Assembly (NCBI GenBank): GCA_965112735.1
Contig: OZ218961.1
Location: 3,224,001 to 3,288,000, forward strand
Source of the DNA: Phaeosaccion multiseriatum
Taxonomy: Eukaryota; Protista; Ochrophyta, other classes
Reading direction: 5' to 3'
DNA: 64,000 nucleotides
Shown in pieces: positions 5,893 to 58,217 of the stretch. The translations under genes were made by a program, and so were the position numbers. Positions within the stretch are counted from its first letter, which is position 1; each line of letters begins with the position of its first letter. Under the pieces are notes generated by a model, which saw only the letters and a program-made list of their open reading frames with translations, was not told where the DNA came from and searched no databases.

Positions 5893-7364
5893 ATGGGTAA
5901 GGTCATCAGAGGATGCCGTAAGGGCAAGGGCGGCATTTTCAAGTCGCACACGCGGCTTCGCGTTGGGGCCCAAAAGATGCGCAAGTACGACTACGCTGAG
6001 AGGCACGGGTACATCAAGGGCGTGGTGAAGGAGATTGTGCACGAGCCCGGAAGGGGCGCTCCCCTGGCCAAGGTCCAGTTCCAGAACCCCTACGTGTTCA
6101 AGCGCGACAACGAGCTCATGGTGGCGGCAGAGGGCATGTACAGCGGACAGTTCATCTACTGCGGACAGAAGGGTCAGTCGACAAAGGAGGGTGACGGGGC
6201 GAGGGGGGGAGGGCTCGCTGCTGTAACGGCGCGAGCTCTCTTCCCTGCGCCCTTGTTACGATGTTCATGTATGCACCTTGCGCTTATGGGTGGCTCCCGA
6301 TAAGGCGCCTGCAACCCCGGCAGGGAAGGGCCCCGCTCAGACTCTTGTGGCATGACTCGCTCGCGCTCTGCCACAGAGCAGAGGGCCCTAGCGACGCTCG
6401 CTAGTGTGTTTCGTCGGGCCGCAGGCCGCATGCACTAGCGACACTTGCCGGTGGTGAAGTTTTGATGGGTGGCTCCCGACAACAGCTGGTGCTGTGAACG
6501 GCGGAGTGTTTGGCGAGAGAGGGGGGAGGGGCGATGCGAATGAGGCACACGAGGGGAGGACCAGCAGTTTCCGACCTTTCCAGTGTGAGGGGCAGGGCTG
6601 CTGGCCGCCTCGCATGCTGATCTTGCCGCTGCTTTCCCCGGATCTCGCTTTCCTCCAGCCCACTCGATGGATGGCACCCGATAACAGCCTGGACTTTTGT
6701 GATGTAGGGGGTGGGGGCGGCAGGGAGAAGTGGAGATATGTGTCATGGGATGCCGTCTGTGAAGTGAAGGAAATTCGGGTGGTCGCTCCGTGCGTGATTC
6801 TCCCTCCTCGGCATCCCCCCTCCCCCACTCCCTCACGCCTTCTCTCTCCCTTTACGCCCTCCCCCCTTTCCCTCCACAGCCCAGCTCAACGTGGGCAACA
6901 TCATGCCCATCGGCCACATGCCCGAGGGGTCCGTGTGCTGCAACCTCGAGGCCTCGCCTGGAGACCGCGGCACCTTCGCCCGCGCCTCTGGAGACTACGT
7001 CGTGATCATCACCCACGACGAGGACCGCGGAACTTCCCGAGTCCGCCTGCCCTCCGGCAACAAGAAGACCATCAAGAGCACTTGCCGCGCCATGGTGGGA
7101 ATCGTCGCCGGCGGAGGAAGGACTGACAAGCCCATCCTCAAGGCGGGCCGTGCCTACCACAAGTACCGCGTCAAGCGCAACGAGTGGCCCAAGGTGCGAG
7201 GAGTTGCCATGAACCCTGTGGAGCACCCCTTCGGAGGAGGTAACCATCAGCATATCGGCCACCCCTCGACGAGCAACCGTCTGGCCTCGGCCGGGCAGAA
7301 GGTCGGTCTCATTGCCGCCCGCCGCACCGGTCGCCTTCGCGGCACCAAGAAGGAGGAGGCCTAG
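5893..7364 (+). CDS. RPL8: 60S ribosomal protein L8 (uL2); exons 5893-6172 and 6880-7364
   Basis: [16 protein letters not shown]...[10 protein letters not shown]...[25 protein letters not shown]...[11 protein letters not shown]; phase-1 GT-AG intron 6173-6879. Confidence 0.98.
6191..6693 (+). ncRNA. Putative structured intronic RNA element(s) in the RPL8 intron
   Basis: Several long imperfect hairpins and three copies of ATGG(G/A)TGGC(T/A)CCCGA at 6286, 6465 and 6667; the intron lacks the microsatellites typical of other introns here. Confidence 0.5.
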
Positions 7365-7955
7365 AGCAGCTCAGCGAGCAGAGCGGACGAAGGCCCAGCC
7401 ACAAGCGACAAGCATAAGTACGGCCCTGGCCCTGCTAACTAAAAGGAATCAAGGCCTTGGTTGCAAGCAAAACGAAACGAAACGAAACGAAAGGAGTGTG
7501 TCTCTCTGGCCATGATGAGAGATGTGTCATCTTCATCTTCATCTTCATAAGCGAAGTGAAGCTGCAATCATGCGTGGGGCCGACCGCAATAGCAGCTCTG
7601 TGTGTGGGGGCGTCCGTGAAGGGCTCTGAGCCGTTACTACTCGCACTTAACTCGTGCGTAGTTGACTATCCCTTTTTTTTATCTCTTTACTTGAAAGCTG
7701 TGTGGATGTGTGTGTGTAGAGCGCTCTTCCTTTAGCGTCTCCTCAACCTCACCATCGTACCGTGCAGGGCAAGTGTGATCGTATCGGACAGGGCACGTGT
7801 GACTAACGGGCCCAGTGCGTTGGTGGCCGAGACAGCAAGAGAGCTCCCTCAACGGCCAGTCAGCCAGTCAGTCAGTCAGTCAGTCAGTCAGGCGCTTCCC
7901 TACTGCCTTCGAGTGGGGGGCAGTACTTCACAGCACGCAAGCGCCCGTCTCTCTC

Positions 7956-10617: not shown

Positions 10618-10863
10618 GGCGTGTTACTGGGCCCTGCGGGCCCGGTAGATATTGAAAGGAAAATTCAATTAAATATCTACTGGAACACCAACTGGATGGA
10701 ACCCGACAGGCATCCGACAACCGACCAACCTTCTGCTGCCGCCCCCCCTCCCCAGCTTCTACAGTTGTATGCCTCCTCCCTTCTGCCCGCCCGCCGTGTA
10801 TGTACACACCGCCTCCCGCGCACTCACGAGGTGACACTCTCACCCCTCTGAATATATAGTATC

Positions 10864-57716: not shown

Positions 57717-58217
57717 AAGCTCCCCAATGTCATTCTTCTCCACGGACGGCCATATCACATCGAGAATACCCGAACCCGTCCGATCTCGGAAGTCAAGCGA
57801 TGTCGAGCCGATTTAGTACTACGGTGGGGGACCACGTGGGAATCGTCGGTGCTGTCTGTTTTTTGCTGGCGAGAAGGAGCTTGGGACATAACTGGAAGGG
57901 CGGGGCGAGAGAGATTGGCTCCTGTTTTTTTTTCCTATGAATAGGTGTGCGTCGTGTGATCGAAGGAAGGCAGTGGAAGGCTACTGATGCCATCTGTGGA
58001 GCTCTGCGGGCAAGAGCACAGAGGGGGGAGACTTTCCCGTGTTGACAGCCCCCTATTGGCCCACGTGCTTCTCCTCTCCTCTCCTCTCCTCTCCTCTGCT
58101 CTCCTCTCCTCTCCTCTGCTCTGCTCTCCTCTCCTCTCCTCTCCTCTCCTCCCGTCCCCTCCCCGGCATCCACTGCCATCCACTGCCATCCACTGCCACC
58201 CTCCCCTCCCGCAGCCC

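Follow-up and report, generated by a model that had tools for sequence, protein, structure and literature searches.

The gene for the ribosomal protein uL2 (human name RPL8), in the stretch of 64 kb that was analysed here and is called the window, contains a single intron, and inside this intron a short sequence occurs three times. The locus raises the question of what the repeated sequence is: part of a noncoding RNA, a site on the DNA, or an element of the pre-mRNA through which the gene is regulated. An earlier note, written from the letters of the window, had read the intron as a folded RNA carrying a triplicated stem-loop, and had proposed two identities for it, namely an element by which uL2 controls its own gene or a cluster of intronic noncoding RNAs.

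The uL2 gene and the motif copies in its intron

The gene, its parts and the elements of the intron are the following, with positions given in the window and bit scores given for R1, a covariance model built from all motif copies:

5893-7364, + strand: uL2/RPL8 gene, with a single intron
5893..6172, + strand: exon 1, from reading of the sequence; ATG at 5893, last base the first of an Ala codon
6173..6879, + strand: the only intron, GT..AG, phase 1, 707 nt, with the motif copies inside
6880..7364, + strand: exon 2, from its translation; stop codon at 7362-7364
6191..6259, + strand: long stable hairpin, -54.1 kcal/mol, z -7.2
6285..6308, + strand: motif copy 1, core UAUGGGUGGCUCCCGAUAA intact, 30.0 bits
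6464..6487, + strand: motif copy 2, type I with G at position 5, 44.1 bits
6666..6689, + strand: motif copy 3, type II with A at position 5, 39.5 bits

The splice junction 6172/6880, at which 707 letters are skipped, is present in contigs of three public RNA runs (X5, X6 and X7). With exon 2 alone as the query, the protein shows 84-89% identity to ochrophyte uL2 (Chrysoparadoxa, the Tribonema cluster, the Ectocarpus cluster and pelagophytes), and exon 2 also matches the Pfam family Ribosomal_L2_C; by this likeness the organism belongs to the ochrophyte stramenopiles. In the 3' untranslated region of the gene, a short (GAAAC)n-type repeat occupies window positions 7465-7489 (+ strand).

A motif search of the 64 kb found the three copies exactly where the earlier note had reported them: ATGGGTGGCTCCCGA starts at 6286 and at 6465, and ATGGATGGCACCCGA at 6667, all on the sense strand of the uL2 intron. 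With two mismatches allowed, the same 64-kb window yielded one further match, at 10692, which is unrelated, and no fourth copy. Searched with R1, the window gives 30-44 bits for the three copies and 10.6 bits for the next best place. When 135 nt around each copy were aligned, only ~20 nt proved to be in common. Copy 1 carries GGCGCC instead of the tail ACAGCC, and this GGCGCC pairs with the 5' flank. Copy 2 is identical over its first letters (23/23) to the copy in an intron-bearing transcript contig, L001, and copy 3 shows one difference in 24 letters from the copy in a Heterosigma-like transcript, L004.

Each copy had been thought to cap a flanking stem of its own, and the combination of a conserved loop with differing stems had been taken to suggest structural selection. 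This architecture did not hold up. Compared with shuffled sequences, the local fold is slightly better for copy 1 (z -1.0) and no better for copies 2 and 3 (+0.2 and +1.2), the stretches that carry the motif in other species fold slightly less well than shuffled ones, and no flanking stem around the motif is conserved in any relative compared. Since the flanks vary, and since the units of Tribonema stand in tandem every 26 nt with 3 nt between them, conservation concerns the motif as such and not a loop on species-specific stems. Among the additional hairpins that had been pointed out, the one at 6191-6259 is real; it is near-perfect and begins 18 nt past the 5' splice site. The corresponding part of the intron shows no counterpart in five relatives, and the hairpin is, by this comparison, apparently specific to this lineage; it may have arisen by a recent inverted duplication, or it may be a structure for splicing that is peculiar to the lineage. 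The hairpins at 6328-6388 and 6388-6404 are only modest, with z about -2.

Conservation, letters and fold of the motif

The uL2 loci of relatives were retrieved by exact protein look-up. Seven other algal sources carry the motif in this intron:

L001, an intron-bearing transcript contig: 1 copy; the intron is AT-rich and 153 nt long
L004, a contig encoding a protein that falls into one cluster with a Heterosigma akashiwo protein: 1 copy
Tribonema minus (L008): 3 copies, repeated in tandem every 26 nt
L012, a contig: 3 copies in tandem, 26 nt apart
Ectocarpus (L013): 3 copies, the same three in a second assembly (L014)
Discosporangium (L015): 3 copies
Sphacelaria (L016): 3 copies

Together with the window, the total is 20 distinct copies from eight sources, a count to which the second Ectocarpus assembly adds none. 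Every gene has one to three copies, all in sense orientation (20/20) and all in the same intron, the position of which agrees with that of the window: phase 1, splitting the codon after ...YCGKK. The carriers span three named classes, the brown, yellow-green and raphidophyte algae. Outside the motif, the carrier introns (153 to 1136 nt) do not align; judged from these sequences, the motif has been kept in the brown, yellow-green and raphidophyte lineages and the remainder of the intron has been replaced. Chrysoparadoxa, Pelagophyceae CCMP2097 and the loci L005 and L006 have neither an intron at the site nor the motif. Phaeothamnion, of whose intron only the final 160 nt were seen, stands outside this comparison of presence and absence. 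The earlier note had named conservation and covariation in relatives as the check on its proposal, and the motif is indeed found in the same intron of the seven other sources, with some covariation.

The subtypes with G or A at position 5 occur together in several genes. In the window as well as in each of the three brown algae, the A type stands third, and it is the sole copy in the Heterosigma-like transcript; this recurrence across lineages suggests that the presence of at least two copies is old.

R1 scores 30-45 bits for each reported copy; two Tribonema copies and one L012 copy of the tandem arrays overlap reported matches and are not separately listed. Over 113 kb, comprising the window and the relatives' loci, nothing besides the copies scores above 15.2 bits, and within these 113 kb the motif is exclusive to the uL2 intron. 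Weaker likenesses were noted at the following places:

L013 5524-5557 and L014 5511-5544, + strand: weak motif-like sequence GAUGGUAGCUCAGCAAACAGCC, 15.2 bits
L029 10042-10088 and 10244-10290, + strand: motif-like pair, 21.5 bits with R1, rough E 0.002

The former lies ~1.4 kb past the uL2 stop of Ectocarpus and is present in both assemblies. The latter belongs to the rDNA spacer of an AT-rich eukaryote (L029), in which a 200-nt subrepeat contains GAUGGGU, 15 letters and then CCCGAAGACAGCC. A strict motif scan of JGI metagenome contigs gave 0 matches, which does not inform on the breadth of the motif, as no such algal DNA is present there.

The motif is ~24 nt long and has the consensus (G/U)AUGGRUGGCNYCCG(A/C)NRACAGCY (alignment A2, 20 copies). 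In this alignment, 10 of the 24 positions never vary, and conservation reaches 90% or more at a further seven. The conservation of letters is stronger than that of any fold, and, as far as the alignment tells, recognition at the level of letters is the firm fact about the motif.

For the fold, pairs were counted in a hairpin (N0-N16, U2.G14, G3-C13, G4-C12 and R5-Y11) and in a helix between loop and tail (G7-Y23, G8-C22 and Y9-R21). Over the 20 copies, 91.9% of the cells of these counted pairs are paired, with 90% for the hairpin and 95% for the loop-tail helix. The wobble U2.G14 is invariant. Changes on both sides occur in four pairs (GU/GC to UG, GC to AU, GC to AU, and CG to UA); those of the loop-tail helix are few, with GC to AU in two copies and CG to UA in one. 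Mismatches are of two kinds, A.C at pair 5-11 (four copies) and C.A at pair 9-21 (one copy). Compared with 0.124 +/- 0.022 in shuffles (1/500), the covariation score reaches 0.201; it is also well above all slid controls, and it rests on few independent events among related copies. Single units fold at -3 to -5 kcal/mol with z about -0.5 to +1.3 (nearest-neighbour model, without pseudoknots), and RNAalifold retains only 3 pairs. On these sequences, a small hairpin of 4-5 bp is plausible, possibly extended to a mini pseudoknot by 3 bp between GGC of the loop and GCY of the tail. We take this topology to be akin to that of the preQ1-I riboswitch aptamer, in which a short hairpin is followed by a 6-nt A-rich stretch and by three tail letters that pair with the loop. 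Conservation of nearly every position and tandem copies are found in both; unlike the preQ1-I type, the motif is eukaryotic and intronic, has only 4+3 pairs and shows thin covariation. We consider it very probable that the motif is a functional cis element acting at the level of RNA, and a previously undescribed one.

Readings other than control by uL2

A cis element in RNA need not be read by uL2. The reader could be another RNA-binding protein or splicing regulator, or the mini pseudoknot could bind a small ligand and control splicing in the manner of a riboswitch. The near-complete conservation of letters, which extends to the loop, the tail and the A-rich linker, would fit such a reader, as would the weak likeness of the motif to the rRNA site of uL2; the hairpin-plus-tail topology presumably resembles that of small pseudoknots binding ligands or proteins (preQ1-I-type folds). 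However, the tie to one gene and one intron across three classes is what autogenous control predicts. A small ligand would, moreover, have no metabolic logic with respect to uL2, and the fold is marginal for a ligand-binding pseudoknot. Recognition by a factor or ligand other than uL2 is thus possible, if rather unlikely.

The motif could also act as DNA, as an intronic enhancer or a site for a transcription factor, for instance as a TGGC...GCC inverted-repeat dimer or a Myb-type YAACNG site. Such a site would agree with letters being conserved more than the fold, with a tail that often reads YAACAG, and with the motif-like sequence that appears twice in the rDNA spacer subrepeat of L029 at 21.5 bits. 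Against this stand the sense orientation of 20/20 copies, and the invariant U.G together with the swaps of GU to UG, which are sensible only as RNA. Further, the motif is lost along with the intron and has not moved to the promoter, and the 5' flanks scanned within the window and the relatives' loci contain no copy. An action as DNA is accordingly improbable.

A more specific version of control by uL2 holds that the motif structurally imitates the site bound by uL2 (L8e) in helix 66 (H66) of the large-subunit rRNA, to the internal loop of which the earlier note had likened it. According to Kitahara et al. (2007), L2/L8e contacts positions 1799-1800 and 1817-1820, the eukaryotic form being a class II triple A1800-U1817-A1819, and L2 has been argued to read architecture and not exact letters (PMC1919495), a point in favour of mimicry. 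For comparison, 116 eukaryotic LSU rDNA stretches were taken from metagenomes with a 35-letter yeast-type pattern chosen not to match human. H66 was readable in 105/116 of these, which represent the rRNA of other eukaryotes and not the LSU of these algae themselves, and it mostly reads GCAUUGCG-AUGG-(4-5-bp stem, 4-6-nt loop)-GUUGA-CGCAAUG.

Both the motif and the class II site of H66 place a 4-bp stem with a 5-nt loop between a 5' GAUGG and a 3' GA(C/U), so that G0 A1 U2 G3 G4 would correspond to 1799-1803 and G14 A15 Y16 to 1818-1820; in both, an A-A opposition and then U.G come after the closing pair, and N0-N16 of the motif pairs as G1799-C1820 would. A mimic would thus retain equivalents of G1799, A1800, G1818, A1819 and C1820. 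Unlike the H66 site, the motif has no equivalent of U1816/U1817 (the UU of GUUGA) and no outer helix, and since these uridines are missing, the triple A1800-U1817-A1819 of the class II site cannot form. The conserved tail ACAGCC has no counterpart in H66, and both G0 and A15 are changed in the yellow-green algal copies (U0 and C15). R1 did not match H66 in 33 rDNA loci, and ungapped matches of the motif to 49 rDNA loci, sense or antisense, were not above shuffles. The shared 5-mer and 3-mer are close to chance level. What is left of the earlier likeness is GAUGG...GA(C/U), in our assessment a weak resemblance, and mimicry of H66 is doubtful.

The reading in which small RNA genes (C/D or H/ACA snoRNAs, or miRNA-like hairpins) reside in the intron, with the motif as a shared box or guide, is hardly credible and close to refuted. 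In its favour, introns of ribosomal protein genes are frequent hosts of snoRNAs, ANANNA can be read at motif positions 15-20, UGAUGG...CCGA is reminiscent of C and D boxes, and 6196-6253 gives weak matches to miRNA families. Rfam, however, returned nothing at gathering level in the window intron or in the loci of the seven relatives, and nothing relevant in either at E up to 10. A box C/D snoRNA would require a CUGA D box and a terminal stem, neither of which is present, and no antisense match to rDNA exceeds shuffles. For H/ACA, which had been suggested from ANANNA, the box lies inside the motif, units 26 nt apart in Tribonema and L012 leave no room for hairpins, and the 153-nt carrier intron is too small. 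The miRNA hits on the 6196-6253 hairpin are far below gathering scores, and this hairpin is unconserved. The proposal of an intronic noncoding-RNA cluster was abandoned on these grounds. The K-loop, another of the earlier suggestions, was dropped together with the kink-turn: no canonical stem is possible from the flanks, and GA...GA is not universal, being present in 14/20 copies and replaced by U...C in five yellow-green copies and by U...A in window copy 1.

Several smaller likenesses were tried and rejected. One concerned helix IV of 5S rRNA, for which the window itself offers a comparison:

57742-57860, + strand: 5S rRNA gene (Rfam RF00001, 107.9 bits), with a T run after it; a single copy, which does not belong to an rDNA unit in the window

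This 5S rRNA of the organism is unlike the motif. The tail does not mimic the true 3' splice junction either, because ACAG/CC matches in only 4/9 species. GGGUGGC could pair to the Gly-His-Pro codons in exon 2, but a 7-mer match of this kind is expected by chance, and the L012 copies with A7 would break it. Finally, in the mini-ORF AUG GGU GGC UCC CGA UAA, the stop is found in only about half of the copies; as the most variable positions (10 and 16) would moreover be first codon positions, the motif is not coding.

Proposed feedback of uL2 on splicing

The remaining proposal, and the one we favour, is that free uL2 acts back on the splicing of its own pre-mRNA through the intronic motif, an idea taken by analogy from other ribosomal protein genes, to which we give about an even chance. 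A trans factor would bind the motif copies in the uL2 pre-mRNA, and splicing would be slowed or diverted; by analogy, the factor would be free uL2. An excess of uL2 would thereby lead to intron-bearing transcripts with early stop codons, from which no uL2 would be made, and the presence of several copies may confer avidity or cooperativity. The pattern of autogenous control is suggested by a gene-specific sense element in one intron, by its letter conservation across three classes, by its several copies, and by the truncation that follows from retention. Of the earlier note, the autoregulatory half stays a candidate and fits an element of the gene's own pre-mRNA, conserved in the same phase-1 intron with 20 copies in 8 sources; its noncoding-RNA cluster and its stem architecture did not find support.

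Retention of the intron can be seen in RNA. In run X5, a contig across 6161-6850 has a depth of 233 compared with ~9000 or more over the exons (word depth), i.e. about 2.6% of the exon value, contig depth being a poor measure; from this contig, a low level of unspliced RNA exists. Assembled transcripts that carry the intron come from L001, from the Heterosigma-like L004 and, as judged from fragmented ORFs, from Tribonema gayanum. Several fragmentary ORFs from the Heterosigma and Tribonema gayanum transcriptomes were likewise observed to retain the intron. Contigs and ORFs that keep the intron imply that such uL2 transcripts are common enough for assembly in several species. Retained-intron contigs are usual for highly expressed genes.

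A retained intron brings an in-frame stop after 2-43 codons. In the window (6301-6303), in Ectocarpus (L013 1852-1854) and in Discosporangium (L015 1340-1342), the first in-frame stop falls within the first motif copy or on its border. Four other species have an earlier stop, and the idea that the motif supplies the first stop when the intron is retained was rejected.

Precedents for feedback on splicing are known from yeast (RPL30, RPS14, RPL22, RPS9, RPL7B, RPL18B and RPS22B) as well as from worm and human (RPL10a and RPS13) (e.g. PMC12311795, PMC13232506, PMC4937301). In addition, the intron of yeast RPL2A stimulates its own gene (PMC5755908). Like the autoregulation systems of ribosomal proteins, the uL2 intron has a conserved RNA element in its own pre-mRNA, specific to one gene, and its retention leads to early stops. 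Unlike these systems, which use one larger rRNA-like hairpin, it has a 24-nt motif that folds weakly and is present in as many as three copies, and it belongs to the ochrophyte lineage. As to what uL2 would recognise, we tentatively propose that the motif may act on its own as an aptamer-like mini pseudoknot that binds free uL2, unrelated to H66, usually present in triplicate and predating the split of brown, yellow-green and raphidophyte algae.

We know of no report of uL2 autoregulation in eukaryotes, and intron-based feedback of ribosomal proteins, known in detail from yeast and from a few animals, has hardly been studied in algae. The candidate is sharply defined and testable: it consists of 24 letters that are easily mutated, it is found in three algal classes, and it is present in Ectocarpus, for which genetic tools exist. 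The motif marks one ancient intron of the uL2 gene and would constitute a new RNA family for catalogues. If the proposed feedback is true, it would be the first such loop for uL2 among eukaryotes, and binding of uL2 to a motif other than a copy of its rRNA site, if it occurs, would bear on how ribosomal proteins gain RNA targets outside the ribosome.
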